This document shows, one piece after another, positions 8,590-45,784 of a stretch of 64,000 nt of DNA (position 1 is its first letter; each line of letters begins with the position of its first letter). The stretch is taken from the NCBI GenBank assembly GCA_002269645.1, contig NIVC01002153.1:62001-126000 (forward strand), read 5' to 3'. A program made the position numbers and the translations under genes. Under the pieces are notes generated by a model. That model saw only the letters and a program-made list of their open reading frames with translations, ran no database searches and was not told the DNA's origin. This DNA comes from Macrostomum lignano (Eukaryota).

Positions 8590-9185
<596 letters not shown>

Positions 9186-17000: not shown

Positions 17001-17099
17001 TAGCTTATGACACAATTCCTTGATTAAGAATTGTTGAATAAGCAATTGTAAGTAATTGTGTAATAGTACGTAATTTGCATTGAATAGTACCATTAGAAA

Positions 17100-18300: not shown

Positions 18301-18732
18301 AGTCGATAGTTAGTTACTCATAATCATAGCGTTAATCAGTTACTAAGCGTTCGTTAAATTTACGGACTGCCGTTAGGATTAACGAATTAGTGTTAATAGC
18401 TTTTGAGTTAACGACAAATTCATCGTTAACGTTAATGACAGTGTCATAATGATACCCTGAAAACGCTAAGAAAGAACAAAACTAAAAATCTGACGAGAAG
18501 TCAGAAGCCCCGCCCCATTTATCATGTTCATGTTTCTCATCTTTTCTCATCATGTTCTAGCTCGTTTTTCTTGCGCTGTCCTCTCTTCATCCCGTGTCTA
18601 CTTACAGTATTGTTTGTGCTCATCGTCGCCTCATCTCCTTTTAGAATCCCAAACGGTGACGCAAGGCTTCTGACCCCTCCTTCACCCCGATGACTCATCA
18701 CCCTCCTCTTGAGCAACTTTTTTCATATTTTC

Positions 18733-19381
18733 TGCCGAGGCGCTGACAGGCAGGTAACGGAGCTTCCGCGCTGTCAGCAGTTCGTCTACCTCGGCGGTCT
18801 GGTACCTGACGTCCGCGAAGATCTGCGGCGTCGCCGCGGGCTCGCTTGGGCTGCCTTTCGCTCTGTGAGGGCGGTCCTGCAGTCCGAGGCCCTACCTGAC
18901 CGCCAGAGGGCGGCGCTGTTCCAGGCGGTGGTCGAGATCATCCTGTTGTACAACGCCGAGACCTGGACGCTGACGGATTCGCTCGAACAGCAAGTCAACG
19001 CGGCGCACGCTGGCCTGCTGCGCGCCGCCTTTAAGATCAGCGACGAGCGGATCACTAACGCGGCCCTCTGTAGCCGCGCTGGCCTGGCCCGTCCAAGTGA
19101 ACTGCTGCGACTTCGGCGACTCCAGCTGGCAGGCCACATCATCCGCGCCGAGTCCTACTGCCCGCAGCCGGTGCAGGAGGTGCTGCTGCTGACAGTGCAG
19201 GCACCCTACCGGCGCGGCCAGGCCCGAACTCGGCGTTTCGTCGACTGCCTGCTGGCCGACTCTGGCGCCCCGGACTCTGCCGGCGGTGCGGCCTTTGTTC
19301 GCGCCCAGGCTCTGAAGCGTGCCCTGTGACGCAGCATTTTTTCCACCTGACAGTGTATTTTGTTGTTGTTGTTGTTGTTGT
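18733..19381 (+). mobile_element. 5'-truncated RTE-clade LINE 3' end with (TGT)n tail
   Basis: ORF FVYLGG...AWAAF...LLYNAETWTL...RRLQLAGH, stop at 19329, short UTR, then (TGT)n. Confidence 0.9.
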
Positions 19382-21709
19382 CTCATGCTATTGCTCTCTT
19401 CTCAAAATTTCTCATGCGACACCCACCCTTCCTCCGCTCCTATTGTTCTCGTTTTTATTCTTTTGTTCTCTTTTCGCACCCAATTAGCACCTTTTTCTCA
19501 ATGTTTACTTTTCTATTGTTCTCGGTTCTCCCCAATTATCCCCGATTTTCATTTCTTTTGTTCTCGGTCCGGATCCCATTGTTCTCAATGTTTGCTTGCG
19601 CAACACTTTTCCGGCGCCCCACTGTGCTTATTTTCCACCCACCCCTTCTCCGGATTGCTCAATTCTCCCATTTCTCATGTCACCATGCCGTTCTCATGCT
19701 TCTCATCATGACTCATTCTGACGTCATCTTCCCAGCAGCCAATCAGAGAGAGGGAGTCATGGAAACGACCTTGGAGCGGCGGCCGCGAGGACTATTTAAG
19801 GAAGCGATTTTCGGCGTGAGAACCTCGGATCTTTCTGTTTTTCGCGGGTTTCTCCCGTTCGGACCTTAAGTCTTCCAGTCCTACTATTGGACTTACTTCG
19901 TCTATAAGGCGAACCTCTGCCGGCCCGCGGTCTGATACCGCCAAGTTTCCTCAGCTCCCCTAGCGAGCTCATCTGCCGGCCCGCGGTCTTTTACCACCCA
20001 GCATCCTCAGCATCACCTAAGCTATATCAGCGCATCGCCGCTTCATTGTCTGCCTGTCCGCAGTCCACAGCCGCCGTCGGTCACTCCATCGCTCTCTCTC
20101 TCTCTCTGTGCAGCTGCCGGTGAGTTCCTGTACTAATTTGTGCTTTAATTGCCTTTGCTTATCCGGGGTTTGCTTATTTCCCATTGCTTGTTTGGAGAAC
20201 TGAGCCAATTGTGTACCGTACTTTGCTGTACGAGCTATTTTACTCAATAGTGAAGCCGCCTAATTGCCTGTTGATTTCGCCTAAGGGCCTAATTATTAAC
20301 CATAACTAAACTCCTCATTTTTAACATCTTCACCATCATTTCCCTCATGGCTTGTTGAGCCTTTCTCCCTGGGTGGCAAAGCATAAGGAAGCTGGGGTAA
20401 GCTAATGGCCTCTCCCCGTGCAAAGCCCGCCTGTGTGTGCGTGCTGCGGGTCCGTGTGTGCGTGCAGTAGAGGGGATTAGCGTGTCTCGGCACAGAATGG
20501 CAGCAGGAAGGTTGCAACGTCCTTCTTACGCGTCCCTTCGCCCGGAGCAATCTAAACTATAGCTAGTACATGTTCGCCTCACACTACTCTTAGTAACTGA
20601 AGCCGCAAGTCCGCCTCGCTCACAGCCACAAAGGATCCCCTGCTGAGAAATCATCCAGATTGAGCCCAGAGTTCTCGAATATGCCCCAAGCAGAGTCCCT
20701 GTACTAAGCCTAAATCTCCTGGTAACAAATCCAGGCGGGGCTCTAGCCTCGAGAGGTCTGGTAGTGAGATCTAGGTGCGCCAGGTCACATTGAGTGTTGG
20801 GCGGTAGCAGCTATTCGGTCATACCATGACCGAGTGACCAATTATTGCACCTTGGCTACAGGTGGGGTCCATGTGGGTCCTTGGCCCTCTGGTCATGAAA
20901 GCGCTACCAAAGCTATCAATCATGTGAGCGGGACAGTCTGGTGCTGGAGGTCCGTCAGGTCATTGCCCGGTCATAGGCAGCCTACGGTCACTGCCCCCTC
21001 TGGTCATGCGTTCGCCTCCCCGCGGAGCGGACGGTCATCAAGGGGTGTTACATCAAATTAATAATTAAATCTAATCTGTTAAATCTATTAAATCTAAATT
21101 TAATTATCAATTAGATTTCAAGTTAATATAATTAGCTACAATACGTCTTCCTTTTTATACCTACTTTAGTAGTATTTTACATACAAGTATTTACTTATTA
21201 TTTGTTACTTTCTTACTCGTAAATGGCTTGGATGACCTCTCTGTGTCAGCTGAAAAGATGTACAGTATAAGCAAAGACAGTAGAGTATTATGAAGTCTGT
21301 TTTGAAAAAGTGCCAGTCAGTCAACTCAACGAAATTAAGAGTTAATAAGTTCAGATCTTTTTGTTTTAACACTATCGCATTTTTCCATTAGCAAAAGCCA
21401 TTACAGTGCCCAGCAAAACAAAATTACTGTTTCAACCGTCATCTTGTGACGACTAAAGAACGAAGTTCTAATAGTTAATTCACTAAATTATTGTCAAGCC
21501 CGAGCAAATTCATTACATGTGGGTATACTCGTACATGTATATCCTCTCAACAGAATTGTTATGTTTATGGTAAATTTGTAAACTTATTGTCATATCGACC
21601 ATCAATCGCAATACACATACATGTAAATTTATGTGCTGTGACTAGAAAAGTTCGGTAAAACACTCAGCACTCAAAGCAGCTTACCGGAATTAGAGAATTT
21701 GATCGCCAC

Positions 21710-23827
21710 ATGGAGACAATGCCAGCAGCTTTTCTGTACTTAGTAACGACGTATTTTGCCCAGCAACTATGTGTCGCCGTACCACAGCCAGAGTTTCAAA
21801 GAGACAGCAACCGAACCAGCAACTTTCTGGCGAGCGACGAAGTGTGGGTGCCCGGAACTACTACCCTGGTTACTATGCGAATGGTTGGAGAGCCGCTGGA
21901 CATTGCAGTTCGATTGCTCAATGGTCCCGCTTCGTTTGGACAGCCTAAACTCTACCTAATGGTGAAATGTTCGCAGTCGGACAGTTTCGTTACAGCGGAG
22001 CTGTTTACCGGATTTACTGAGCCCATTTCTGCTACGGGTGAGAATAACAACAAACTGGGGCGCGTGTTCTGTAAGCACAGGCAGCCATTCTCTGTTCAGC
22101 CAGTACAAAGTCGGAGCAACCAGTTCAGGCTGAAGCTGATTGACAACGCCGGGAGAGTTCCGTTTAAGGAATCGCTCGACTTGTCAGCAGAGATAGCTGT
22201 ACGGGCCGCGTACAACAGACTCGAGCTGACTTCGAGTAGTCTACTCATCTACAACTGGGACTCTCTACTCAGCTTTAAAGTCCAGCCCGCCCAGCATCCT
22301 GGTGCTGCATCGCAATCTGTGGACCGCGTGCTCTCAGAGGAGGGCAAATCTTATCTGTTTTCTCTCTTTTATGAAGTCCAGCAACCTTTTTTGCAAAAGG
22401 TGAATTTCTTAAAGCAAAGTTTCATTAAATTAGTGAATAACGCGTCTCTTGTAATGCGCAGGCATTTGACAGTCTCGATAATAGTTCGCTTTGACGAAAA
22501 ATCCTGCTCAGAGCCAGTAGAGACCAGCTCGGCAATCGTTATTTCATCTGGCGATCCAACATTGAGAAATGAATCCTATTACAAGCGATCTGACTTCTTC
22601 CAGCCTTGTTGTGTCTTAAATTTGCAAACAGGTGCTTTAGAAGTAAACGAAGTACTTCTTGGTAATTTATTCTGGCAAGTGATTAGAAGACGGAAAAGTA
22701 TTTATTCAGCCGTATTTTTCTGCCTTGCGATATCTTCAAGCAATAAAGCGATGCGATATCATTCATCTTTAACCCTCAAAAAGGCATCAACTAATATTCG
22801 TCCCGAGTTGATTAACGAATATCGCAACGATTCTGGCTCTGAAAACGGGAAAACTAAGCAGACCCCCGCTCGTGTTTATCCAAGCCAGAGATTCGAAAAT
22901 GAGTATACTTCTGTCTACCCAAGCTGGTTTATAGGGACGGCAGAAAAATATTTCAAAATTTCAATTGCTCTCGATGATGTTCGGCGGCAAAAATGTAGAA
23001 ATAGCGTGGATAGCATGGAAGTGCAGCTCATTTCTGGAATGATTGACGTCCTCATAAAAACGCCAATCACGTGCTTCAAAAGTAGCAAGGCCTATCGCGT
23101 GTTCCACAATGGCACGGTGTGCGCTGGTCAGGTGGGAGGCGACGGCTTTCGAAACTGCAGTCAGTACTCAGTTAGCAAGTTTTACTCAGCTATCCGGTTT
23201 GATGGCATGCTTAGCACTAAACATGCTGGAGTTTACACATTCGCTACAGAGGACACAGTGCTCAAGTTCATAGTGACAGTGATAAGCCTACCTTTGTTCC
23301 GCACCGATGCTCAGTCTGGAGATCTCCAAGCGGAATCGATGGTCACCGAGCTGGTCCAGCTGTTTAACCTGAGCTGCACTGCGTTTTACTCCGGCGTGTC
23401 ACCTGTCAGTCTGAGGCCGTCATTTTTAGTTAAGGCTGCCGGAAAGCTGCTGGAGTTGTCTGTCCACGAGTTCACTCAGTACTTGGGTACGGCTCCTCAG
23501 AAGCTAGAGGTGAAACGTAGCGACGACAACAACAGCAGCAGCAGGCTGCAGCTGTACATGCCTTACGTGGAGAAGCCAAGAGCAGAGGCCATTTCCTTTG
23601 TAGTCCGTTGCCGGGCCTCACTAACGGCTGCAGTTACAAAAGAGCTTCTTGGCACGTCAGTGGAGTACTCAACTGAAACTCGTGGCATTGTCCGCTTTAC
23701 GCATTCTGATGAAGATTGGACTTTTCGGAACTTATTGGCAAAACTCTTCTCGCCGAGACTTTGCTGCGACGCTGTGCTACTCACAACAGCTCTGTTACTA
23801 GCTACTGTTGCCAAGTACTTAAATTGA
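21710..23827 (+). CDS. Intronless 705-aa predicted cell-surface protein, paralog A (signal peptide, constant N-domain, variable central domain, Ig-like C-terminal part, hydrophobic tail)
   Basis: Uninterrupted ORF; hydrophobic N- and C-termini; HAGVYTF resembles the Ig F-strand motif; clear homology to 35368-37389. Confidence 0.85.
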   Translation: METMPAAFLYLVTTYFAQQLCVAVPQPEFQRDSNRTSNFLASDEVWVPGTTTLVTMRMVGEPLDIAVRLLNGPASFGQPKLYLMVKCSQSDSFVTAELFTGFTEPISATGENNNKLGRVFCKHRQPFSVQPVQSRSNQFRLKLIDNAGRVPFKESLDLSAEIAVRAAYNRLELTSSSLLIYNWDSLLSFKVQPAQHPGAASQSVDRVLSEEGKSYLFSLFYEVQQPFLQKVNFLKQSFIKLVNNASLVMRRHLTVSIIVRFDEKSCSEPVETSSAIVISSGDPTLRNESYYKRSDFFQPCCVLNLQTGALEVNEVLLGNLFWQVIRRRKSIYSAVFFCLAISSSNKAMRYHSSLTLKKASTNIRPELINEYRNDSGSENGKTKQTPARVYPSQRFENEYTSVYPSWFIGTAEKYFKISIALDDVRRQKCRNSVDSMEVQLISGMIDVLIKTPITCFKSSKAYRVFHNGTVCAGQVGGDGFRNCSQYSVSKFYSAIRFDGMLSTKHAGVYTFATEDTVLKFIVTVISLPLFRTDAQSGDLQAESMVTELVQLFNLSCTAFYSGVSPVSLRPSFLVKAAGKLLELSVHEFTQYLGTAPQKLEVKRSDDNNSSSRLQLYMPYVEKPRAEAISFVVRCRASLTAAVTKELLGTSVEYSTETRGIVRFTHSDEDWTFRNLLAKLFSPRLCCDAVLLTTALLLATVAKYLN

Positions 23828-24569
23828 ACGATTGCCCTCGTTCTAGGGTGGAAACTTCACAATAGTAAATAATGGCACTACTCGATGCATTCAAAACATA
23901 TAAGATTTAAATGGTAGGGTTGGATTGGGTGGTAGGATTGTAACATTGTTACAGACGAGATATTGCATTTCGCTACCCATTTTGATTTAATTTGCTTTAC
24001 TTTTTAGGTCCTGCATGATTTTAAAGGTAGATTTTACTTGTAGCTAACTTTATATATACCTTGGTGTCGATTGCTGGTAATCGCGTGCATTTATGAAAGC
24101 TTCATCATTTTTATCGACTCTTGTTTTTGGATAAGAATATCGGATACTATATGTGAATTAAATAATCTTATGGCTGTTTTGATATTTGACCTGCGTGACC
24201 TGCACTAAGTAATAATTAAACAAAAATTATTAAACCATTTATAGCATATTTTTGTCTTTCCAACGTCTTCAGATCTTCACGGAGTCGAAAATAGCAAATC
24301 TGCTATTTGAAGATTTGAGATTATAAAGAACTGCTAAATCAAGCTCGTTCGAGATCGAGCTGTAGTGTTTAAAACTACATTGGATAAATATCATTGCAGG
24401 TAAAACGAACGAATTAGTTTGTATTCTTGTAAATTCCTTGATTCAAAAAATAAAGAATCGAAAATATTCGATAGACAAATATAATTGACGGTTTGGACAA
24501 CTGAAGTGAAAGTCTTTCAATTTTTAGCACTAAAATACCCTCGCCTGGATCTACTCACAGGTTTATTAA

Positions 24570-27033
24570 CCTTTTCAAGCCTGAATTCCTAAATAGAAAG
24601 CTCCGTTCCTGCCGGCATGGTCAGCAGAGCTGACCATAGACTATTTCAAGTTTTCAGTGAACTGAATTGCACTGCCACTCCTGCCGATAAGCCAGCCATC
24701 GCTGGTCTAATCTAGGGTTGAAGGAGAATGTACATTTGGAATGGGTTGCACACACGCTTATCAAAACTGTACAAGACTGGCCATAGACAGTCCAGCTTTA
24801 GTATATTAAGGGCTGTGCCAAATTCTGTACAATTCTATTCATGTAATTAAAATCAATCCAAATATGGATATTCTGTTGACTTCCGACTCCGAAAGTGACG
24901 CTGGAATAGCGGAGAACTCCGAGTCGTCTGAGTCGGTCACTATCAGCGAAGTAGAAGACGATTGGCAGTTTGTGGAGCCAGGCGAAGACATTGTTGAAGA
25001 CGGCCCCAGTTTCACTGGAATTTCGGGTGTAAACCCCAGCATTGTCCTTCCCGAAGACCGTGAAGACATCCAATATTTTCTACGACTGTTTCTAACCGAT
25101 GAGCTGCTGGATAAGATCGTGGAGTGGACAAACGCAAAAGCTTGGGCTGAGTATGAGCAGGCGACACATGATGGAGAAGATGTTTCGAGCTTGCTGAAGT
25201 CATGGAAGGACACAAACCGCAGTGAGATATCCAAGCTGTTGGGTATGTACCTGTTCATGGGCATCTCACGGAAGCCGGAACTGCATGATTACTGGAGCAC
25301 CAGTGTCATTCACAGTACTCCGTTTTTTCAATCGCCCAATGGCTTGACCCGTGACCGATTCAAGCAGCTGCTGGCCTTCCTTCGTTTCTACGATGCACGA
25401 GCACCCGCCTCGAACGACCCACTGCACAAGATTCGGCCGCTGCTCCGTCTGGCTCAGCAGCTCTGCGCGAACGTGTACCAGCCGGAGCAGCAGGTCAGCG
25501 TCGACGAGTCTCTGATTCTGTACAAGGGGCGCCTTCAGTTTAGGCAGTACATCCCATTGAAGAGAGCCAGAGTTGGAATTAAAATGTACTGCGCCTGTGA
25601 GTCTGCATCTGGCTACCTGTATAACTTTCTAGTACATTCGACTGCTGAAGAGAACTTTCATTTTGGCGACGACCTCGGTTGTGACCAGCTGTCTCTAAGC
25701 GAGAAAATCGTAGTGCACCTTTGCAAGGACCTGCTCGGTTTCGGCTATCACCTTTTCGTCGACAAGTGGTTTGCCTCAGTACGGCTTGCGACTTTTCTGT
25801 ACGAACGCAGCACACTGCTGACAGCAACTGTTCGAGCCGACCGTGGAGTGCCGTTGGCATTGCGCAGTCAGCAGGTGCCGTTGAATGACGTAGTTTTCAT
25901 GAGGAAGCTGCCAGTGCTGGCCATGAAAATCCTGGAGCGCAAGGAAAGCGGCTTGAAAACATTCTTCATGATCGACACCCACGGCTCAGCTCAGAAAGTA
26001 GCGACGAACCGAATTCGCAAGAATGGTGAAGCTGTGCAAGTGCAGAAAAGCGCCTCGAACCTGCTGTACAACCGCTGCATGGGAGGCGTTGACCGACTCG
26101 ATGCCATGCTGAAACCGTACGACAGCTGCCGCAAAACCTACAAGTGGTTTCATAAGTTGGGGTTTCATCTCTGCCTGCTGCTTGTACACAATGCATGGGT
26201 TGTATACTCAAAGCACGGTGGCCGGCTGCAATTCTTCAAATTCCTGGAGAGCTGTATCACCCTACTGGTTGACTCCACGGGACCAGGAAGACAGCGAACG
26301 GCAGCTAGGCAACCAGCGGCGGCCGCAGCTCAGCAGCACTTTCCATCAAAGCTGCCTCCGAGGGAATCGTGCCCGAGGCCGGTGAAGCGATGCCGCGTGT
26401 GCTACCGCAACGGCACTGCGAAGCGCACCGTGTTCTGCTGCAGTGCGTGTCCGAATGCACCTGGACTGTGCCCAAGTCCCTGCTTTGAACGGTGGCATGT
26501 GAATCACTGAATTAAAGAACTCCTTTCACCAGCCGTACTATATAATTCGCGTTTGTATTCGGCATTGACTATTAATTTTTTACCTTTATGTTAAGACAAA
26601 AATAATTAAATGTCCAACTGCGGCACTCTACCACAATATTGTTCCCTGTATTATTATATGCTACTATACGAGCGTACATGTAGTTGCGTCTCAAAATCAT
26701 AAATTTTTTGTTGCTTTTGGACAAATATCTTCTTTTGCTTGAACTTTAACTTTAACTTTCCCTTTAACTTTATAGTTCGAAATTAATTCAACAATAAACT
26801 GCATCTTTCTTCTGTGCCATTGTTAGTACATGAAAGTTGCTCTAGTGGTCGCTACAGAGTGCTACAGACTGAGTGAGTGCGCTATTTATTCCATGGTCAG
26901 CTCAGCTGACCATGTTCGGCAGGAAAGGAGCTGCAATTCTGCGCCTCACTGGCCATAGACTACCAATTTTTTTTCTCGTCACCTTCTATTCTATGGCTAT
27001 GGTCAGCTCTGCTAGCCACCCGGTATCTAAGGG
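24570..27033 (+). mobile_element. Full-length piggyBac DNA transposon
   Basis: TTAA at 24566-24569 and 27034-27037; ends CC...GG; ~40-bp subterminal inverted repeats at ~24600-24640 and ~26891-26931. Confidence 0.9.
24864..26510 (+). CDS. piggyBac (PGBD4-like) transposase, 548 aa, intact
   Basis: SVDES, VDKWF and GGVDRLD catalytic aspartates; C-terminal Cys-rich domain RCRVC...CSAC...CPSPCF..WH. Confidence 0.95.
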   Translation: MDILLTSDSESDAGIAENSESSESVTISEVEDDWQFVEPGEDIVEDGPSFTGISGVNPSIVLPEDREDIQYFLRLFLTDELLDKIVEWTNAKAWAEYEQATHDGEDVSSLLKSWKDTNRSEISKLLGMYLFMGISRKPELHDYWSTSVIHSTPFFQSPNGLTRDRFKQLLAFLRFYDARAPASNDPLHKIRPLLRLAQQLCANVYQPEQQVSVDESLILYKGRLQFRQYIPLKRARVGIKMYCACESASGYLYNFLVHSTAEENFHFGDDLGCDQLSLSEKIVVHLCKDLLGFGYHLFVDKWFASVRLATFLYERSTLLTATVRADRGVPLALRSQQVPLNDVVFMRKLPVLAMKILERKESGLKTFFMIDTHGSAQKVATNRIRKNGEAVQVQKSASNLLYNRCMGGVDRLDAMLKPYDSCRKTYKWFHKLGFHLCLLLVHNAWVVYSKHGGRLQFFKFLESCITLLVDSTGPGRQRTAARQPAAAAAQQHFPSKLPPRESCPRPVKRCRVCYRNGTAKRTVFCCSACPNAPGLCPSPCFERWHVNH

Positions 27034-27149
27034 TTAAACAATTTTTACGAAATGCTATCGGACAACAGCAAGTAAGCAAAGTTTCAGGCTGAATTTCAGC
27101 TGATCCTGTCTTTTAATTGTATTTTTTAGTTTAATTAAACACTATCAGA

Positions 27150-27305
27150 GGAGTTCTAGCCTAGTGGTTAGGTTAGAGCGTCGGACTCACGACTGGAAGG
27201 TTGGGGGTTCGATTCTCGACCCACTCAGGACAATGTGTGTCCTTGAGCAAGACACTTAACTCTGCATTGCTTCAATTCACGCGCTGTAAAATGAGTGCTA
27301 GCATT
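27150..27305 (+). mobile_element. tRNA-derived CORE-type SINE
   Basis: A-box-like TAGCCTAGTGG, B-box-like GGTTCGATTC, then CORE-like TGTGTCCTTGAGCAAGACACTTAAC...CTGTAAAATG; second copy at 41209. Confidence 0.8.
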
Positions 27306-27887
27306 CCGCTCACCTTCACCCAGTTCCGCCAACTTGACTAGGTTAAGTGCAACAAGCCTTCTCCATCGCTAGACAATATCATCCTGCCACAGGTCAGAAG
27401 GAACGTGCTCAATCAAAGTCAGTGTGAAGTCAACGAGTCATCTCATCAAGCAAGCAAGAAGACCAAGTTTCAACGTGTTACGCTCGTATAACATCATCGA
27501 AACCGGAAGCCCAACGTAATGTACATGGGCAGCCCTGCATAAAAGCAGATGCTCAAACACAAGTGACACCGAAGGACCTGGACGGTGGGCGATCAGTGGC
27601 CTCTGGAACCACGGACCCCGAAGGGGGGAGTCACTCGACTCCCACAAAGGGAATGGCCAGGGGGCGACTGTGCGCCTGCACGTGCAACAACGTCTTCCTG
27701 GCCAACGCTCCAGACGCACCGCACCGCCTGTTCGTCTGGCGCAATCCCAACGGGGCGTCCCTGGAAACAGATGATTGACTACAAATGCTAATTAACTAAA
27801 TGACACTATTTGAAAATTCACATTTTACTATCAATTATTATACTGATTAATGGCCACACTTAATTTCCTATCCCCTATCAATATTGC

Positions 27888-28275
27888 TTTTGTCAGCCTA
27901 ACTGAGAATAAAGCCACCCAAAATGAGAACCCTGCCTACGCTGACTGCGAACGGCCTGGCTGCATGCAGCCTTAGTCTATGGGCCATAGACAATAAAGGA
28001 CAAGCAAAGTGATAAAAAGCCATCCAATGTGAGAATCGATTGGTCTATGCGTCGTATTCTTTTATTTTTATACCTTCTGAGCCATATGACTAGCCAATAG
28101 CTTGAACGGAATAACGGAAACAGGAACACACTGGATGATACAGTACAGTAAATTAAAGAGCTAAAATAGCCGTCCCTCAATGCACTGTCTAAAGAGTCAT
28201 TAGCTAGGCCCTTCGTATTCAGCGTAGGCAGGATTCTCACTTTGGATGGCTTTATTCTCAGTTAGGCTGACAAAA
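27888..28275. mobile_element. MITE with ~57-bp terminal inverted repeats
   Basis: TTTTGTCAGCCTAACTGAGAATAAAGCC...CCTACGCTGA recurs inverted with 3 mismatches; no TSD seen. Confidence 0.8.
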
Positions 28276-29422
28276 CCTATACTATTTTATACTATTTCAT
28301 TTCAGACCCAGGAGAATAATCCTCGTTGCACAAGGATTTCAAAAAAGGGGGAATAATATAGGGATTAGAAATTAGGAAAAGTCTGAGAAAGTAAAAAGAT
28401 TCGCTAAAGGGCAAAGTAAGAAGCAAAAATCAGGGGGCGAAAGTTCAATTTAGAGATAAGACACTTGAGTAAAAGTAATTAAAAGAACGGTGCAAGAAAG
28501 CGAAATAAATCATAGATATGATAAGAACTTAACTGTTACTTTCCCCCAAGATTTCAGACCAAACGAGATGACTTCAAAGTCGGCCGAGGTACCAGACAGA
28601 GTCAGTCGGCGCGGTGCCAGGAGAAATCGATACGGCAAGATACCCCGACTGGCAGGCGAGATAGAACGATGGTCAACAGGCCAAGGTCAGCGGTGATGTA
28701 CGTGGATCGGCCCAGGGAGCGAAAGCACGACTCACCGAGGGACGCATGGGTGGTCTGACGTGCGAATCGATTCGAATAATGAACCCTGAATTGACCTTTA
28801 ACCATCGTCTGATGCGACCAACTAACAGATATTAAATTACCTCTCTCGCCCCGTAGCGACGTGCTAATCTAATGTTGCTGCGTCTGTTGCTAATCAGCGG
28901 CGGCGGATGACGTGTATCTAAAAATCTATAAGAAAGACACGGCCTCGGCCCCGAAATGGGCGCTCTAAAAAGACCTTAAGTGAAGTTAGAACTCCTGTGC
29001 AGTTCATTCAAACCTAGAGACTTATATTTGTCCTTTGTGCTAAAGGAACAATTTGTAGCCAACCGGTAGACGATCTCGGTTGTAAAATCTTTTAGGCTTA
29101 GGAATTAGTTAGAACGGAAGCACATAAGAGACCAACTTGGGTAAAAGTTAGTAAGGCCTAAAAGAAGACTTACAGTTACGTCGGTTCTTTTTTTCTTCAC
29201 TTGTCATTTGTCAAGTTATTATGATTTTTACAATTTGTTACAATACAGAACAGCCACATTCAAAACCACACAGTCACTTCCACTGCATCATGTCATCAAT
29301 TTCAGTTCAAGGGGAAACGTCGGAAGAGAAGTACCGGGGGGAAACGACCGTAAGCCGGGGCATTCCCAGATCAAGTGCTCCGCATTCTCAACACCAGAGA
29401 GGTGTTAAATCGGATGACTTCT

Positions 29423-32400
29423 TGTAAAGACTGCGATAGTGAAGGCGGCAGTGTGAGCGCGAAACGAAAGGCTTAAGGCCCCATATGGCCGTGGGCCCAA
29501 TATATTTATATTTGTTAGGCGACAGTGAACGATGCGTACATTCATGAACATGTACATTGCTACGCTATTGATTAGGACAGAGCGGGCGAGAGAGAGAGAG
29601 AGCGCTGGGAACAGGCACCGCCCTGCTAGGCTAATTCAACTAGGTGGCAATAACACTTCTCCCAAAGCAGAAAGAAACAAAGAGGGGATAAAAGCTCGAA
29701 TGACAGTCATCGAAGTACTCGTACAATAGTTCCAGTCCTTAATCAGCCCCAACCCCAAATCAGTCCTTGTAGCTGATTGGCTTGTCTTTGGCTGCGCGGG
29801 GATGCGGCCGATGGGCAATGCCGCATTCTGGCGGCGTCGGTTCCGCGTTCGCCGCAGCGCCCTTTGCCGCCACCAGCGGGCGGATGTGCGTCAGGTGTCG
29901 AGTGCAGGTGCGGTCGCCCTGTTGTAGCACGTAGGAGTCACCCCGCCTGTCCACGACGGTCCAGGGCTCGACCTCGAAGGGTGTCTGAGTCTTTGTTCGC
30001 TGATTCCGCCTCCGTAGCACCGCAGTACCCGGCCTCACGCTGCAGGCCTTGGCCCTCCGGGGACGGTTGAAGTCCCTGGCCATCGCTCTGGTGTAGGCCG
30101 AGTGTCGCTGGGTCAGCTGTGTGCGATGATGGTACACGGGCTGCGAGGAGCGCGCCGACGGGACGGTGTCGTTGAAGGTCCGGCCCATTAGCAATTCGGC
30201 CGGCGCGACTCCGGTTGCCGAATGAGGAGTGACGCGGTATGCGAGGAGCCAGTCGTCTAGGGCACTGCGCCAGCTGCGGCCTTCGGCGATGGCCGCCCTG
30301 ACGACCTTGTTGACGCATCGGTTGACGCGCTCGGTCGCTCCGTTGGCCTCCGGGTGCAGCGGGCAGATGCGGCGGTGCTTGACGCCGTGCTCAGCGAGAA
30401 AGTTGTGGAACTCTGCAGAATTGAAGGGTGGGCCGTTGTCGCTGATGATTTCTTGTGGGATGCCGTACCTGCTGAAGAGAGTTTTCAGGTGTGGCAGCAC
30501 AGCCTCTGCGGAGGTCGAACTGACGATGTTGATCTCTGGAAACTTTGAGTAAAGGTCTGTTGTCACTAGCAGCATTTTGTCCTGCACCGGACCGTAGAAG
30601 TCCATGCCGAGGACGAGCCAGGCTCCGTCGGGGAGCTGCGAGGGCTGAAGAGGTGGCGGATTGGTCGTTTTAGGCGACGTTGCTTGGCAGGCGAGGCAGC
30701 TTTGCACGAAGACCTGGCAGTCGCCCCTCATGCCTGGCCACCACACCTTCGTTTGAAGCCGGTCTAGCGTTTTCCGCCAGCACTGATGGCCTTTGTGCGC
30801 CAGCTGGAGTACTACTCGCCGAAGACTCGCTGGCACGATGATCGAAGAACCGCGAAGCAGAACGCCGTCGTGGGCCGACAGTTCTTGCCGGATGCAGGCA
30901 AGCGCACGGAGCTCATGGTCGTTGCTGGTCCACTGGTTGGTCTGAAGTGCCGAGATGGCTGCCTGAGTGACACCGTCGAGCCTGGCCGCCTGCTTGATTG
31001 ACTCGAAGCTGAGACCTTGTGGCGTTGATCCGAGGGCGATGGCGTTGATGAACTGCCGGTCGAGCACTTCGCCGGGGTTGTCGGTTGTCTGCATTTGCGG
31101 CTGCCTGCTGAGCACGTCGGCTGGGTTTTGCGGCCCGGGCTGGTAGATGATGTTGAAGCTGAGGTGCTGCACTCTCAGTGCCATACGCTCGATTCTGGGC
31201 GGCGGCCGAGACCCCGGCTGGAAGAGTGGTACCAGCGGGCGGTGGTCTGTCACGATGGTGAACCTTGGGCAGCCGCTGAGGTAGTGCTCGAATCGGAGGC
31301 AGCCAAACTTCACAGCAAGTGCCTCCCGCTCTATCTGAGCATACCGTTGCTCGACGGCCGTCAGCGATCTGCTGGCGAAGGCGATAGGTCTGCGGACTCC
31401 TCTCTTGTCCGTCTGGCTCAGGATAGCGCCGAGGCCGACCGGCGAGGCGTCCACGTGCACCTCCGTCTCCATGTTGACGTCGAAGAAGGCCAGAATGTTT
31501 TCTGAACAAATGGCGGCCCTAGTTTGCTTGAAGGCTTCTTGCTGCTTGTCCGTCCAGCTCCAGACGTGGCCCTTCTTGAGCAGCTCTCGCATCGGTTGAG
31601 TCAGGTCGGAGAAGTTAGGAATGAACCTTGACAGGTAGGTTGCCAGCCCAAGGAATGAGCGTAGCTCCGATGTGTTCGTGGGCTCCTTGAAGGCCTTGAG
31701 CGCCTTTATTTTCTCCTCTGTTGGCTGGACGCCGCTGGCGCTGATGCGCATTCCGAGAAATTCGATGGAAGGTTGGGCGAGACGGCACTTATCGGGGTTA
31801 AGGGTGATCCCGTGGTCTCTGAGGCGCTGGAGGCACGCCTTCAAACGGCTGTTGTGTTCGGCCATGTTGCGCGCGAAGATCGTGATATCGTCGTGGGCCC
31901 ACCTGACACCATTTAGGCCGCTGAGGACTCCCGTCATGACTCTCTGCAGCACCTCCGACGCGTTGGTGAAACCCATGCTGAGCCTGGTGAGTCGCATGAG
32001 GCCCAGCGGGGTGCTGAAGGTGAAGAGGTGGCGGGACTCCGGGCTCACGGGGATCTGGTGAAAGGCTTTCGTGATGTCTAACTCGCTAAATACGGTCGAG
32101 CCCGCCATGTCGTCAGTGATTTCCTCGAAGGTCGGGATCGGCTGCTTTTCCGGCACGGCAAAAGAGTTCACATTGCGAAGATCCTGGCAAATACGAATGC
32201 CGCCAGACTCCTTTGGCACGACAACCATCCGGGAGACCCACGGTGAAGGCCTATGCACGCGCTCGATGATGCCTTCATCTAGCAGGAGCTGTAGCTCGTC
32301 GATGACGGCCTGTCGCTGGTGGACGGGTATCCTGGACGGTGGATGGCACACTGGCACGGCTTCGGGGCGCAGCCGAACGTCGACTTCAACGTCCTTGACC

Positions 32401-34031
32401 CGGCCAAGGCCTTCAAAAACTGGCTGGAACTCGCAAAGTATGTTGCCTAACCGTAAGTCCGGTTGTAGGTCGTTGTCCAGATTTTGATCGTGTTTGGCGA
32501 GTAGCTTCTTCAATGTCGAGGATTCGGCGCTGTCACGAGGTTTCACAGCGTTGATCTGTCGGGCCGGCTGCTGGATGTGTAGGATTCCCATGTCGAAGGC
32601 GGTGTTGCGCCCAAGCAGAGTGATGCCACTGCCCTTGGTGATGAAAAACGGGGCTTGTAGCTCATCTGAGTCGGTGCGGAGAGCTAGATCGGCAAGGCCA
32701 AGCACTTGCAGCGGTGTTGATGAGCCATAGCTGAAGATCTGCTGGGTGGCGCCACGCAGGGGAACGTGCTGCAGGTGTTGGAAGTTCTGCTCGCTCATGA
32801 CATTGCAGCTCGCGCCGCTGTCGACCAGCACGTTGAATTCTTTCCCTTCGATCTGCAGGCGCATGTTGGCCGATCTCTGCCCTGACGACGCAGCCGGCGT
32901 CTGTATCGTGAATGCTTCTTCGGTGAGGTTGTCGGGCGAGACATAGATTGAGCTGCCGTCCGTGTTGTTTGCAACCACGTTGATGCTGGAAGAGTTCTGC
33001 TGCCGGCGTTGCCTGCAGGCCTTTGCGAGGTGGTTGGGCTTGCCGCATGACGAGCAGGTCTTCCCTTTCGCGGCGCCGCAGCTGCTGTGGCCGCGCTCTC
33101 CACAGCGGTAGCAGGTGGTGTTGGAGGCGAATGTCGGCCTCTGGCCGTTTGACTGTGGCTGGTCTCTGCGCTGGTTTGATGCCGACTTGTGAATGGCCGC
33201 GATGCTGCTGCTGCTGCTCTCCATGGCTGTGGCCTGCTCTTCCGCGGCTTCTAGTGCCCGAGCCTGTCTGAGAGCATCGTTCAATGCGATGTTGCTCTCC
33301 TGGAGCAGTCGCCGTCTGAGCTTGTCGGAGCAGCAAGTTGCGACGATCTGGTCTCTAATGAGAGAATCCGTCAGGGTGGAGAACTCGCAGGCTTCAGCAG
33401 CTGCCTTTAGTCTAGCGTACCAGGCGTCCACTGGCTCTCCAGTCTGCTGCACGCAAAGTCTGAACTGGTAGCGGGCGAAGACGATACTCTTGCGTTCGTC
33501 AAAGTGTGCTGTAAGAGCGGCCAGCAAGTTGCTGAGGCTGTCTTTCTTGTCGTCCGGCAGGTCCTTGACGATTTGGGCGATCTCCCTGCCTGCCGTGTAG
33601 GACAGCAGTTTGCACTTCTGAGTTTCGGCCGTAATTCCGGATGCGTCGATAAAGTCGCGGAAGCGATCGGCCCACACGCTCCACCGTTTAGAGATGTTTT
33701 GTTGATCAGTGTTTGTGCTGAATTGCTCAGGCGGTGGCAGGGAGATGAAATGCGCCATTGTGGCTAACCGTAGGGGTAAGCTCTGCTTGCGATGCCACTG
33801 TAAAGACTGCGATAGTGAAGGCGGCAGTGTGAGCGCGAAACGAAAGGCTTAAGGCCCCATATGGCCGTGGGCCCAATATATTTATATTTGTTAGGCGACA
33901 GTGAACGATGCGTACATTCATGAACATGTACATTGCTACGCTATTGATTAGGACAGAGCGGGCGAGAGAGAGAGAGAGCGCTGGGAACAGGCACCGCCCT
34001 GCTAGGCTAATTCAACTAGGTGGCAATAACA
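29423..34031 (-). mobile_element. Complete compact Ty3/Gypsy LTR retrotransposon (4609 bp)
   Basis: 233-bp LTRs at 29423-29655 and 33799-34031, TG...CA, no differences seen; 5-bp TSD CTTCT; PBS TGGCATCGCAAGCAG; PPT GGGAGAAG. Confidence 0.97.
29760..33758 (-). CDS. Gypsy Gag-Pol polyprotein, single ORF of 1332 aa
   Basis: Zinc knuckles, protease VDSGAS, RT (LSMGF...WAHDD), RNase H (VDASPVGLG), integrase (MDFYG, ISDNGPPF, NGATER) in Gypsy order. Confidence 0.97.
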   Translation of the reverse strand: MAHFISLPPPEQFSTNTDQQNISKRWSVWADRFRDFIDASGITAETQKCKLLSYTAGREIAQIVKDLPDDKKDSLSNLLAALTAHFDERKSIVFARYQFRLCVQQTGEPVDAWYARLKAAAEACEFSTLTDSLIRDQIVATCCSDKLRRRLLQESNIALNDALRQARALEAAEEQATAMESSSSSIAAIHKSASNQRRDQPQSNGQRPTFASNTTCYRCGERGHSSCGAAKGKTCSSCGKPNHLAKACRQRRQQNSSSINVVANNTDGSSIYVSPDNLTEEAFTIQTPAASSGQRSANMRLQIEGKEFNVLVDSGASCNVMSEQNFQHLQHVPLRGATQQIFSYGSSTPLQVLGLADLALRTDSDELQAPFFITKGSGITLLGRNTAFDMGILHIQQPARQINAVKPRDSAESSTLKKLLAKHDQNLDNDLQPDLRLGNILCEFQPVFEGLGRVKDVEVDVRLRPEAVPVCHPPSRIPVHQRQAVIDELQLLLDEGIIERVHRPSPWVSRMVVVPKESGGIRICQDLRNVNSFAVPEKQPIPTFEEITDDMAGSTVFSELDITKAFHQIPVSPESRHLFTFSTPLGLMRLTRLSMGFTNASEVLQRVMTGVLSGLNGVRWAHDDITIFARNMAEHNSRLKACLQRLRDHGITLNPDKCRLAQPSIEFLGMRISASGVQPTEEKIKALKAFKEPTNTSELRSFLGLATYLSRFIPNFSDLTQPMRELLKKGHVWSWTDKQQEAFKQTRAAICSENILAFFDVNMETEVHVDASPVGLGAILSQTDKRGVRRPIAFASRSLTAVEQRYAQIEREALAVKFGCLRFEHYLSGCPRFTIVTDHRPLVPLFQPGSRPPPRIERMALRVQHLSFNIIYQPGPQNPADVLSRQPQMQTTDNPGEVLDRQFINAIALGSTPQGLSFESIKQAARLDGVTQAAISALQTNQWTSNDHELRALACIRQELSAHDGVLLRGSSIIVPASLRRVVLQLAHKGHQCWRKTLDRLQTKVWWPGMRGDCQVFVQSCLACQATSPKTTNPPPLQPSQLPDGAWLVLGMDFYGPVQDKMLLVTTDLYSKFPEINIVSSTSAEAVLPHLKTLFSRYGIPQEIISDNGPPFNSAEFHNFLAEHGVKHRRICPLHPEANGATERVNRCVNKVVRAAIAEGRSWRSALDDWLLAYRVTPHSATGVAPAELLMGRTFNDTVPSARSSQPVYHHRTQLTQRHSAYTRAMARDFNRPRRAKACSVRPGTAVLRRRNQRTKTQTPFEVEPWTVVDRRGDSYVLQQGDRTCTRHLTHIRPLVAAKGAAANAEPTPPECGIAHRPHPRAAKDKPISYKD

Positions 34032-34329
34032 CTTCTCAGAACAAAAGAATAAGGAAAAAAGTCGGATTCTTCAAAGTATTTTCTTGCCTTCAGCACTTCC
34101 GCGGTCTCGCGCAGGAACACAAAACTTATAAAAAAAACTTACCAAAGAACTTACCAAAAAATTATTATTTAACGTGGGGTTGGGTTAGCAGAGAGAAAGG
34201 GGGGGTTAGCTCATGTACATTTAATGAAGAAAAAAATGCATGTCCATGTACAGTTAAATATGTAAACCCCCAACAATATAGCAAAAATGAACCTTCAGAA
34301 CAAGAAGCAGAATTGGCATTACTCACTGA

Positions 34330-34980
34330 GGATTTTTTCTTGGAGGTGACGATTCCCTGGAGTTGGCAAAACAGCCATGTCCCGCGAGAGCCATGGTCAC
34401 CGCCCTGATGTCCCTGCGGTTGAGTCCAAGCAGGGGCCCTGCAGAGCCCGGGAGAAGGACAGGGGACAGCCACGCTGGATTGCCGACAGTCGGGGGCGTT
34501 AACCTACCTCAGCTCCATGTGCTTAGATGCCACCCAACTGGTTGATCCGAGTGGTGACAATGGCGGTGGGGGTGGGGGCCACTGGCAGGGGACCAGTAAA
34601 AGAACCGGTCAAGCCAGCCTTGGCCAGGCGATTGGCCAATTCATTGCCAGGGTGGACCCCAGTGCCCAGAGATCCACCTTAGGGACACCTTGTTGGAGAC
34701 GCCTAAGCTGTTAAGCTGCGCGATGCAGTCGAGGACTGTACGCGAGCAGGTGGTGTTGCGCTCAAGGGCGTGGATCGCCGCTTGACTGTCTGAGTGAAGA
34801 ATAATCTCCTTCCCCCAGACGCGCTGATTGTACAGCTCCATGGCACAGGAGCTGATGGCGAGAACTTCGTTCTGGAAGACGGTTGATCAGGTGCCGGTGT
34901 GCTGGGAGAAGGTCCCCACTGTTCACACTCTAGACACAATGCAGGAGCCGGAGCCAGAGGCGGAGTTGATTTGTGCCCCA
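34330..34980 (-). mobile_element. Fragment of an RNase H-bearing (I/Loa-type) non-LTR retrotransposon
   Basis: ILHSDSQAAIHAL...LRWISGH, GNELANRLAK, RRDIRAVTMALAGHGCF; frameshifted. Confidence 0.8.
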
Positions 34981-35367
34981 CAAAATTCTAATTTTTATAC
35001 AACTGTATTTGTCACAGATCAACTTGGTCCTATTTTATGGAGATACTACGATGGAATTTTTACTGCGAATTCAACCAGCTAAAAAAATTCATTTTAAACC
35101 GAAGAAGTACAAGTACTATTATATGAAGTAGCTAGGTCTGTAGCTCGTGAGAGGTCTTCGGATGATGCAAACGTTAGATTCGTCCCTCAAAGGGCCATAG
35201 ACCTTCCAATACGGGCTCTATTAGCTCAAAGTTAAATAGCTAATCGAAAGTGTCTTACTTTGATACCTAGGTCGTGGAAATTTCATTTACGAGTAAAAGA
35301 ACCCTAAGTAACGAGTCGGACTTAGCCATACCTTACGGACAAAATCCCAATTTCATTGAGACTAACA

Positions 35368-37389
35368 ATGCTAGCAGCCTTTCAAAGCGTGATTGCAGCG
35401 TGCATTGTCGGCCAAATACTCGGTGTAAGATCCATTTACCCTACGGAACACAGGCCACAGCCAGAGTTTCAAAGAGACAGCAACCGAACCAGCAACTTTC
35501 TGGCGAGCGACGAAGTGTGGGTGCCCGGAACTACTACCCTGGCTACTATGCGAATGGTTGGAGAGCCGCTGGACATTGCAGTTCGATTGCTCAATGGTCC
35601 CGCTTCGTTTGGACAGCCTAAACTCTACCTAATGGTGAAATGTTCGCAGTCGGACAGTTTCGTTACAGCGGAGCTGTTTACCGGATTTACTGAGCCCATT
35701 TCTGCTACGGGTGAGAATAACAACAAACTGGGGCGCGTGTTCTGTAAGCACAGGCAGCCATTCTCTGTTCAGCCAGTACAAAGTCGGAGCAACCAGTTCA
35801 GGCTGAAGCTGATTGACAACGCCGGGAGAGTTCCGTTTGAGGAATCGCTCGACTTGTCAGCAGAGATAGCTGTACGGGCCGCGTACAACAGACTCGAGCT
35901 GACTTCGAGTAGTCTACTCATCTACAACTGGGACTCTCTACTCAGCTTTGATGATGAGGCTGACGACCAGAGTTTTTCCGGAGGGTCAGCTCCAAAGAAC
36001 CAACACCAAATACTTTCCAAGGAAGCCATCGATTATTTATCGTTTCATTTTGACTACCTGCATGGTTCAAAATTCAAGAAAGTTCCATTTTTGCACGACA
36101 GGTTTGCTAAAATGGTGCAAAAATCTTCTCTAGTAGTGCGCAGCAGCTTAGTTTTCTCGGTAATTGTTCGCTATAACAGCAGCTCCTGCTGGGATGTTTG
36201 GGCACCAAGATCCGATATCGTTGTTTCATCCGGCGATCCGACTTACTCGACTTACATTCAGTCAAATTTGAAACCGTGCTACTATTTGGATTTGCGAACT
36301 GGAGTTTTGGAGGTCAACGGACACTGCATGAACGGCCGAGTGGACAAGGCTGCCAGACTAATCAAGAACGACACGCAAGTTGTGTTGACTTGCTACCGGA
36401 TATCGGCAAGTAACAAGGCCTGGCGTTATAACGCATTGAAGCCAGTCAAAGTCAATTACATGGATCTAAGATCTTTTCTTGTTGACATTAGAAGCGGTTT
36501 ATTTTTGGAAGTTTTTAATAATTTTGATAGCTACAAACGATTCGTAAAAAAATGCCATACCAGCTTCGATAAAATTGAAGTACAGCTATTTTCTGGAATG
36601 ATCGACGTCATTTTACAAGTGCCAGTCGTGTGTTCCATAATCCAACGCGTGTTCCACAATGGCACGGTGTGCGCTGGTCAGGTGGGAGGCGACGGCTTTC
36701 GAAACTGCAGTCAGTACTCAGTTAGCAAGTTTTACTCAGCTATCCGGTTTGATGGCATGCTTAGCACTAATCATGCTGGAGTTTACACATTCGCTACAGA
36801 GGACACAGTGTTCAAGTTCATAGTGACAGTGATAAGCCTACCTTTGTTCCGCACCGATGCTCAGTCTGGAGATCTCCAAGCGGAATCGATGGTCACCGAG
36901 CTGGTCCAGCTGTTTAACCTGAGCTGCACTGCGTTTTACTCCGGCGTGTCACCTGTCAGTCTGAGGCCGTCATTTTTAGTCAATGTTGACTTTAATCTGG
37001 TAAAGATGGCTGTCCACGAGTTCACTCAGTACTTGGGTACGGCTCCTCAGAAGTTAGAGGTGAAACGTAGCGACGACAACAACAGCAGCAGCAGGCTGCA
37101 GCTGTACATGCCTTACGTGGAGAACCCTGGCGACAAGGCCAATGCGTTTGTAGTCCGTTGCCGGGCCTCACTAACGGCTGCAGCTACAAAAAAGCTTCTT
37201 GGCACGTCAGTGGAGTACTCAACTGAAACTCGTGGCATTGTCCGCTTCACGAATCAGGTTCGAAATTTTCGAAACTATATGATGAGCAAAGACGTCTCGT
37301 CGGCAGTGCAAATCGACATTGCGCTGCTTACTACATCCATCTGCTTTTCTATTGTCGTTAGCAGCCTGACTGTAATCGATATGGGATAA
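35368..37389 (+). CDS. Intronless ~673-aa predicted cell-surface protein, paralog B
   Basis: ATG at 35368 (MLAAFQ...); same architecture as paralog A with near-identical blocks. Confidence 0.85.
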   Translation: MLAAFQSVIAACIVGQILGVRSIYPTEHRPQPEFQRDSNRTSNFLASDEVWVPGTTTLATMRMVGEPLDIAVRLLNGPASFGQPKLYLMVKCSQSDSFVTAELFTGFTEPISATGENNNKLGRVFCKHRQPFSVQPVQSRSNQFRLKLIDNAGRVPFEESLDLSAEIAVRAAYNRLELTSSSLLIYNWDSLLSFDDEADDQSFSGGSAPKNQHQILSKEAIDYLSFHFDYLHGSKFKKVPFLHDRFAKMVQKSSLVVRSSLVFSVIVRYNSSSCWDVWAPRSDIVVSSGDPTYSTYIQSNLKPCYYLDLRTGVLEVNGHCMNGRVDKAARLIKNDTQVVLTCYRISASNKAWRYNALKPVKVNYMDLRSFLVDIRSGLFLEVFNNFDSYKRFVKKCHTSFDKIEVQLFSGMIDVILQVPVVCSIIQRVFHNGTVCAGQVGGDGFRNCSQYSVSKFYSAIRFDGMLSTNHAGVYTFATEDTVFKFIVTVISLPLFRTDAQSGDLQAESMVTELVQLFNLSCTAFYSGVSPVSLRPSFLVNVDFNLVKMAVHEFTQYLGTAPQKLEVKRSDDNNSSSRLQLYMPYVENPGDKANAFVVRCRASLTAAATKKLLGTSVEYSTETRGIVRFTNQVRNFRNYMMSKDVSSAVQIDIALLTTSICFSIVVSSLTVIDMG

Positions 37390-45600: not shown

Positions 45601-45784
45601 AAAGGAAAAGGATGAGAGAGGCTACAATTGCGGAAGTTTGAAGTCAGTCTGTTCCATAGACAAACTTGTAGCTTCAGTTAGCAACTTAATCCGAATTAGG
45701 TTTGTTGGGATTTTGTGTTCCACTAGCATTTCTATGTTGATTCGCGGCGGTAGTTTTTGCTGAGAAATTTCGAGGTTGTCAACA

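Follow-up and report, generated by a model that had tools for sequence, protein, structure and literature searches.

The stretch of DNA analysed here, 64,000 nucleotides long and called the window throughout, is part of contig NIVC01002153.1 of the Macrostomum lignano assembly Mlig_3_7 (GCA_002269645.1). It carries two tandem genes in one orientation, g1 and g2, which we show to be mosaics in which blocks of almost identical DNA alternate with deeply diverged parts (Table 1). The DNA of both genes is 100% identical to the contig. Searching with the g1 protein returned PAA91928.1 and the g2-type PAA91929.1 and no others; g1 is 99.7% identical to PAA91928.1 (BOX15_Mlig010250g1) and g2 98.6% identical to PAA91929.1 (BOX15_Mlig008635g1), both from subgenome copy B. 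The most likely start codon of g2 is the ATG at 35368, in agreement with PAA91929, rather than a TTG at 35356.

Most of the genome of M. lignano line DV1 exists in about three paralogous copies, which diverge by 2.2% overall and 1.1% in coding sequence (CDS) (Zadesenets et al. 2023, PMC10733133). All three subgenome copies, i.e. copy A (the window), copy B (NIVC01000068.1) and copy C (NIVC01001001.1), contain the pair in a colinear arrangement, and in each it is flanked by a ceramide-kinase-like gene and UFD1. The gene starts are 13.6-13.7 kb apart in copy A and 6.6 kb and 7.0 kb apart, on the same strand, in the other two. Two young transposon insertions restricted to copy A, a piggyBac-like element and a Ty3/gypsy retrotransposon, account for 7.1 kb of the 13.6 kb and thereby for the wider spacing in the window. 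The gene models of the assembly were built from RNA-seq and assembled transcripts, so that the existence of models at the loci implies some transcription; with regard to expression, the six gene identifiers were absent from a full-text literature search and from the supplements of Grudniewska et al. 2018. A literature search combining 'Macrostomum lignano' with 'gene conversion' returned nothing relevant.

Near-identical blocks alternate with diverged domains

Both genes have the same architecture, in which the constant blocks, 99.4-99.6% identical between g1 and g2, lie on both sides of a diverged central domain. An earlier note on this DNA, made from the sequence alone, had described three of these blocks, and we recovered them exactly: block 1 with 495 bp and two mismatches (g1 positions 21870 and 22166), block 2 with 335 bp and two mismatches (23221 and 23261), and 114 bp of block 3 (23461-23574 versus 37011-37124) with a single mismatch at 23504. 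An independent repeat search also found the blocks. At the 3' side the homogenised region extends further than the note had it, continuing to 23701 in g1 and 37251 in g2, broken by two small mismatch islands. The central domains have the lengths of 273 and 232 codons that were claimed and contain the short shared motifs quoted for them.

Outside the blocks, the signal peptides, centres, tails and flanks are, as had been proposed, deeply diverged, their DNA being as different as unrelated sequence. Sensitive blastn of the two genes with about 700 bp of flank per side detected no DNA similarity in signal peptide, tail or flanks; the sole match besides the blocks was one of 48 bp with 81% identity (23003-23050 versus 36562-36609), a short way upstream of block 2. 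The transitions are mostly as abrupt as the note had said, most block edges being nucleotide-sharp, including the one at 21781/21782. The description does not hold upstream of block 2, where the DNA remains partly conserved (65-81% identity), as if the edge of a tract were eroding. A scan of the window with Rfam found no RNA family, so that no known RNA embedded in the constant blocks accounts for them.

Table 1. Positions of the gene pair, its constant and diverged parts and neighbouring features in the window
Feature	Position	Strand	Remarks
g1	21710-23827	+	Intact intronless open reading frame (ORF), 705 aa
g1 signal-peptide region	21710-21781	+	DNA unrelated to g2 35368-35454; ~51% nt identity over 21 aligned codons
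g1 constant block 1	21782-22276	+	N domain, aa 25-189; partner g2 35455-35949
g1 diverged central domain	22277-23095	+	273 codons; 54% nt and 39% aa identity to g2
g1 constant block 2	23096-23430	+	Partner g2 36646-36980
g1 divergent island 1	23431-23459	+	13 of 29 nt differ from g2 36981-37009
g1 constant block 3	23460-23574	+	Partner g2 37010-37124; 1 mismatch
g1 divergent island 2	23575-23596	+	10 of 22 nt differ from g2 37125-37146
g1 constant block 4	23597-23701	+	Partner g2 37147-37251; 3 mismatches in 105 nt
g1 diverged tail	23702-23827	+	Hydrophobic stretch followed by KYLN; ~54% nt identity to g2 tail 37252-37389
g2	35368-37389	+	Intact intronless ORF, 673 aa from ATG
g2 constant block 1	35455-35949	+	Partner g1 21782-22276
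g2 diverged central domain	35950-36645	+	232 codons
g2 constant blocks 2-4 with both islands	36646-37251	+	
piggyBac-like element	24570-27033	+	TTAA on both sides; between the genes, not part of the pair; copy A only
Ty3/gypsy long terminal repeat (LTR) retrotransposon	29423-34037	-	Between the genes, not part of the pair; copy A only
Ceramide-kinase-like exon	9371-9955	-	
UFD1	44512-45057	-	
Reverse transcriptase (RT) fragment	45776-46303	+	

The blocks are homogenised DNA rather than conserved protein

The contrast between blocks and centre is strongest at synonymous sites. Not one of 171 four-fold degenerate sites differs between g1 and g2 in the constant blocks (0/78 in block 1 and 0/56 in block 2); of the 43 such sites in the centre, 23 do, a contrast (Fisher P=2e-19) that excludes chance. 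The blocks are therefore homogenised DNA and not merely a conserved protein sequence. The synonymous divergence (dS) calculated according to Nei and Gojobori (NG86) is 0-0.05 in the blocks and about 1.9, i.e. saturated, in the centre, where the nonsynonymous divergence (dN) is 0.57 and dN/dS 0.30-0.33. The lack of DNA similarity in flanks, signal peptide and tail and the dS of 1.9 in the centre, set against a divergence of only 1.1-2.2% between the subgenomes, show that the duplication giving rise to g1 and g2 is old and that the blocks were made identical recently.

A second gene pair repeats the mosaic and a control pair lacks it

In an exhaustive HMMER search of 1.84 billion cluster representatives, relatives were found only in M. 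lignano, and a profile search of a 5.8-billion-protein database with the family alignment returned g1 and g2 only. The family has so far been detected only in M. lignano. Its short-type members comprise, besides g1 and g2, a second pair, h1 (PAA81941) and h2 (PAA81940), and a fifth member, P0005. The genes h1 and h2 lie 11.5 kb apart on one contig and are found paired again on a second contig; one 83-nt GT-AG intron interrupts h1 in a Thr-rich insert of its centre (11220-11302 of extract L005), and g1, g2 and h2 are intronless. In the N- and C-terminal regions, identity of the second pair to g1/g2 is no more than about 30%; between g and h members it amounts to 28-31% in these regions and 14-21% in the centre.

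The h pair has the same layout as the g pair, consisting in order of a diverged signal peptide, a block of 447 bp with 98% identity, a diverged centre, a block of 713 bp with 99.2% identity and a diverged tail. Four-fold degenerate sites differ at 5 of 209 positions in its blocks and at 17 of 36 in its centre, for which dS is 1.5 and dN/dS about 0.4. In the 713-bp block, the two paralogs within a locus differ at 5-6 positions and the same gene between the two loci at 9-10, a signature of concerted evolution; the 447-bp block, unlike the 713-bp block, groups by gene.

We calculated trees for each region, as the earlier note had suggested. The family-level topology turned out to be the same for all of them, with g1 grouping with g2 and h1 with h2 at 100% bootstrap, and the incongruence between blocks that the note had looked for is confined to branch lengths and to the subgenome copies. 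As the centres, too, pair as g1+g2 and h1+h2, the two duplications either took place independently or were followed by an ancient conversion of the centre as well. The same grouping speaks against a single ancestral pair handing down matching centres to both the g and the h pair.

As a control we used P0010 and P0026, a tandem pair of long-type members with 3.3 kb between the genes, which are evenly about 45% identical at the amino acid level along their length. Nearly the whole protein is encoded by one exon in both, making exon shuffling at former intron positions an unlikely source of the mosaic. This also bears on the idea that g1 and g2 are retrocopies of two isoforms of a multi-exon parent with mutually exclusive exons, which would account for the abrupt block changes and for two intronless genes in a species with a mean of 4.9 introns per gene. 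The control pair shows a large single coding exon not to be unusual in the family, no parent gene appeared in the protein searches, the copies are kept in tandem and in the same orientation in all three subgenome copies, and conversion tracts vary between these copies (see below); we consider such an origin extremely improbable.

Raised GC3 in the homogenised blocks

Many rounds of GC-biased conversion are expected to raise the GC content at third codon positions (GC3). In g1 and g2, GC3 is 0.58-0.60 in the homogenised regions and 0.40-0.47 in the centre (0.58 in block 1 and 0.42 in the centre of g1), and in h2 the values are 0.79 and 0.53, respectively. In the control pair GC3 is flat, ranging from 0.43 to 0.54 across all three regions. 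The contrast is significant for g1 (P=1e-5), g2 (P=0.0095) and h2 (P=4e-10), compared to P=0.5 for the control P0010, and the elevation is confined to the homogenised blocks. This argues against a single recent domain swap. The same GC3 test has been applied to protocadherin clusters (PMC1852091).

The domain swap would be a one-off recent chimera, in which either a recent duplicate had its centre, ends and flanks replaced by those of a divergent third gene or the constant blocks were transferred, once and recently, into a distant paralog, and the sharpness of the edges together with the near-identity of the blocks would suit it. Besides the GC3 footprint of many rounds, several observations speak against this scenario: the HMMER search of 1.84 billion representatives revealed no donor, the nearest relative of each centre being the other one at 36% identity; conversion tracts vary among the subgenome copies; a second pair has the same pattern; and homologous repair is unable to start at about 50% identity. 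Taken together, these make a one-off chimera very unlikely.

Conversion after the split of the subgenomes

The mosaic is found in all three subgenome copies, so that it predates the split of the subgenomes and is very unlikely to be an assembly artefact. A comparison of g1 of copy C with the other copies on ungapped DNA showed it to carry the g2 version of island 1 (13 sites) and of part of island 2. In block 2, g1 of copy C is identical to g2 of copy B (0/335) and differs at three sites from g1 of copies A and B. No fixed g1-g2 difference exists in block 1 across the six sequences, three copies of each gene. The g2-type tract in g1 of copy C shows that conversion continued after the subgenome split; together with the clustering by locus in part of the h pair and the raised GC3, it indicates that conversion is still in progress. 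Codon 656 of this g1 copy has become a premature stop (GAA to TAA), and a cysteine that is invariant in the family has been lost (C429Y). Between copies A and B, g1 differs at six positions, all nonsynonymous; the differences among the g2 copies are mostly at third codon positions.

A stray fragment of 129 bp of g2-type block 3 (12483-12611 of extract L001), located about 365 bp downstream of the g1 stop, was found in copy C only and has no counterpart in the window. It extends into the g2-type sequence ENPGDKA and is 95-96% identical to the genes. It looks like a footprint of misdirected repair or copying, in the same copy that has the converted, stop-bearing g1.

In two annotated models at the loci, PAA60426.1 (520 aa) and PAA73632.1 (709 aa), a 5' portion from g1 is fused to a 3' portion from g2, with 'introns' of about 7-13 kb in between; the models span 10001-25114 of extract L004 and 10001-19056 of extract L001 (window ~21710-36823), and the contigs bearing them have no annotation for the intact g1 and g2 ORFs. 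These chimeras are most likely annotation artefacts due to the identical blocks. They do raise the question whether the assembly itself suffers from cross-contamination of paralogs in the consensus, the more so in a three-copy genome in which 93% of read pairs are multi-mapping (PMC10733133). However, the mosaic is present on three contigs with different spacing, transposons and private single-nucleotide polymorphisms (SNPs), and that of the second pair on two further contigs; PacBio reads are much longer than the blocks of 335-713 bp, whose flanks are unique; and polishing cannot create the GC3 contrast. An origin of the mosaic in assembly or polishing is thus barely conceivable.

Partly Ig-like proteins with a distinct central domain

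Sequence reading and hydropathy indicate a hydrophobic, signal-like segment at the N-terminus of g1 and g2. The proteins end in a hydrophobic stretch (14-20 residues, with the hydropathy of g1 peaking at aa 684-688) and only 3-4 further residues, an arrangement that may represent a glycosylphosphatidylinositol (GPI) signal or a minimal membrane anchor. Pfam gave no domain for g1 and g2 even at E<=1. Among the 16 aligned family sequences, Ig_2 and Ig_3 match below threshold in 3 and 2, respectively, and comparing the family profile with PDB sequences gave nothing significant (best E=0.12). In the relatives of about 900 aa, a transmembrane segment is accompanied by a tail of the L1CAM type, matching Bravo_FIGEY above the Pfam threshold; this tail is present in 9 of the 16 aligned sequences, all of the long type, and absent from g1 and g2, which end shortly behind the hydrophobic stretch.

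The AlphaFold model of g1, based on an alignment of 16 sequences (predicted TM-score (pTM) 0.71, mean predicted local distance difference test (pLDDT) 68), contains a beta-rich N domain (aa 53-181) folded as a beta-sandwich, a mixed alpha/beta centre (about 205-362) followed by a low-confidence, g1-specific insert (369-425), and two immunoglobulin (Ig)-like beta domains (435-530 and 552-663). About 39 aa of g1-specific sequence in the centre are left disordered. In a Foldseek search with the full model, the best PDB matches were multi-Ig fragments of DCC, contactins, neurofascin, Sidekick and Dscam with E=1e-10, at target-normalised TM-scores of only about 0.5. The model thus suggests that the N- and C-terminal domains are Ig-like. 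The centre modelled alone had no fold match in the PDB (best E=0.69), and we dropped a four-Ig horseshoe as a possible arrangement, the centre alone being without such a match.

The edges of the mosaic can be compared with these predicted domains. The constant DNA starts at about the likely signal cleavage site; block 1 ends at aa 189, next to a low-confidence linker in the model (190-203); and block 4 ends at aa 664, the end of the last predicted domain. Block 2 starts at aa 463, two strands inside the third predicted domain, and its counterpart in h1/h2 at the beginning of that domain. The earlier note had called g1 and g2 surface proteins. The signal-like N-terminus, the hydrophobic C-terminal end, the Ig-like domains of the model and the long relatives with transmembrane segment and L1CAM-type tail all agree with this, and we regard a surface location as plausible. 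An adhesion or recognition function of g1 and g2 would fit these features.

Is the centre a diversifying recognition domain?

The earlier note had gone further and placed the genes in a receptor, allorecognition or gamete-recognition family loosely similar to Hydractinia Alr, in which conversion homogenises the scaffold and the central domain diversifies as a specificity domain. The first half of this proposal is upheld by the identity at synonymous sites, the g2-type tract in a g1 copy, the clustering by locus in the h pair and the raised GC3. The second half predicts positive diversifying selection driving the centres apart, as in allorecognition, gamete recognition or paired receptors. In its favour, the same domain-level mosaic occurs in two separate pairs, the proteins resemble surface molecules, the centre ORFs of both genes are intact in all subgenome copies, and the centre of g1 varies at 5 sites in 819 nt among the three copies, all five being nonsynonymous.

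The data on the centre itself point the other way. Its dN/dS gives no sign of positive selection between the paralogs, in either the g or the h pair, the ratio being imprecise with a saturated dS. The g2 centre has 10 substitutions and one 9-nt indel in 696 nt among the three copies, and the variation of the centres in this one inbred line does not exceed the 1.1% found for CDS across the genome. Five nonsynonymous to zero synonymous changes are indistinguishable from neutrality (0.75^5 = 0.24) and stand beside the stop codon in copy C; these recent g1 changes fit relaxed constraint as well as adaptation. Searches of Pfam, PDB and protein databases turned up no homology to Alr or gamete-recognition families, a direct comparison with Alr not being part of them. 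The claims of a diversifying specificity domain and of a link to Alr-like families are therefore not borne out, and we consider a recognition system driven by positive selection unlikely.

Regional gene conversion between old tandem paralogs

With high confidence, we explain the locus by regional gene conversion between old tandem paralogs of a membrane-anchored, partly Ig-like surface protein family. According to this model, repeated non-reciprocal copying since the duplication has kept the N domain and the two C-terminal Ig-like domains near-identical. Conversion needs near-identical sequence to start and to extend. Weakly constrained regions would diverge first, cease to pair and thereby block the extension of tracts, so that the signal peptide, the central alpha/beta domain, the anchor tail and the non-coding flanks would act as barriers where tracts stop. 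Such homology barriers would explain both the nucleotide-sharp edges and the two small divergent islands, and the centre being the fastest-evolving region among the short-type members makes a purely mechanical origin plausible. Purifying selection on two distinct centres, as suggested by dN/dS of about 0.3, probably also removes conversions overwriting them, so that selection would have some role in keeping two distinct central domains. Gene conversion is a known evolutionary process, of which we describe a new, clean example and no new mechanism.

Several points weigh against this explanation or limit it. The family-level trees are congruent for all three regions. The fine-scale evidence consists of few sites from a single PacBio assembly of a three-copy genome, in which short-read polishing could move SNPs between near-identical blocks. 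The changes in g1 are signs of relaxed constraint, and judging from them the pair may be decaying. Moreover, a homology barrier alone does not explain why the same domain-level pattern occurs in two pairs; selection on the centre may contribute.

Comparison with known systems

The closest known system is regional gene conversion in the variable exons of clustered protocadherins, described in fugu, zebrafish and human (Yu et al. 2007, PMC1852091; Noonan et al. 2004 cited therein). Both systems have tandem genes on the same strand, a surface ectodomain in one large exon, blocks of >99% DNA identity adjoining strongly diverged domains, homogenised synonymous sites and a raised GC3 in the converted part. 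In contrast to protocadherins, g1/g2 have no cadherin repeats, are only two genes per array without shared constant exons, belong to a family seen in M. lignano only and have homogenised parts on both sides of the diverged domain instead of only at the 3' end. A Pfam search of the family for cadherin repeats found none; weak matches to Protocadherin (PF08374; best E=0.021) were obtained for 3 of 16 sequences. The resemblance to protocadherins is thus one of analogy.

Partial conversion between neighbouring paralogs of the Ig superfamily also keeps some extracellular domains near-identical in Siglec-5/14 and Siglec-11/16. The g pair is similar in that some domains are near-identical and others differ. 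Conversion in the paired Siglecs homogenises the N-terminal domains, which bind the ligand, and leaves the signalling tails different, whereas in g1/g2 the outer regions are homogenised, the centre differs and a cytoplasmic signalling tail is absent. With the L1CAM/neurofascin/contactin group the family shares the Bravo_FIGEY tail of its long members and the multi-Ig matches of the g1 model, and its short members with their hydrophobic C-terminus resemble GPI-anchored contactins in layout; unlike that group, g1/g2 lack a Pfam Ig/FN3 match and a cytoplasmic tail and have an alpha/beta centre without a match in the PDB.

Hydractinia Alr1/Alr2 likewise lie in a cluster and encode surface proteins that have Ig-like domains, with one domain far more variable than the others. 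In the colonial animal, the membrane-distal domain of Alr is extremely polymorphic between alleles; here, the difference is one between two fixed paralogs, with substitutions in the centre among subgenome copies of at most 1.1%. Arthropod Dscam1, Dscam being among the fold matches, is alike in concept, combining a constant scaffold with an alternative internal domain. Its variation is achieved by mutually exclusive splicing of one gene and not, as in g1/g2, by two separate and complete genes without alternative exons.

Transposons, repeats and neighbouring genes in the window

The piggyBac-like element contains an intact ORF of 548 aa (24864-26510) with a DDE_Tnp_1_7 domain (E=4e-70) and a C-terminal zinc finger; its absence from copies B and C points to a recent insertion, and it may still be active. 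The Ty3/gypsy element has direct terminal repeats of 239 bp that are 100% identical and an intact ORF of 1332 aa (29760-33758) covering gag, protease, RT, RNaseH and integrase, and since it is likewise absent from copies B and C, its insertion appears to be very young. At 27882-28281, an inverted repeat of 80 nt (89% complementary, arms 240 nt apart) may be a small non-autonomous transposon; this region aligns only partly with copy C.

The ceramide-kinase-like exon upstream of the pair matches CERK_C (E=2e-12), and downstream lies the first part of the UFD1 gene, with the RT fragment just before it. Tandem-repeat arrays at 185-1026, 6131-6620, 8616-9180 and 10214-12800, with CT-rich units of 35/70/105 nt, eleven units of 44 nt, (ACAG)x140 and minisatellites of 21-24 nt, account for the pronounced skews in strand composition on the left side of the window.

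Significance

As a summary, we provide a very clean animal example of regional gene conversion, with internal replication: within one ORF, zero synonymous divergence stands beside saturation, accompanied by sharp edges, a GC3 footprint, a second pair and a non-converting control. For work on M. lignano this has practical consequences. The identical blocks have already given rise to the chimeric models PAA60426 and PAA73632, and they will confuse read mapping, expression counts and the design of probes for RNA interference (RNAi) or in situ hybridisation, leaving the central domains as the sole paralog-specific targets.

A more speculative and, in our estimate, improbable possibility is that the short members form a two-variant recognition module, in which selection keeps alternative centres on a scaffold held constant by conversion. 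If this were true, g1/g2, and likewise h1/h2, would bind different partners or each other, possible settings being sperm-egg interaction, self/partner discrimination in an outcrossing hermaphrodite or cell-cell sorting, and the same mosaic arising independently in two pairs would represent a convergent design. The family comprises uncharacterised surface proteins with L1CAM-like long members, found so far in M. lignano only, whose function is testable in this transgenic model.

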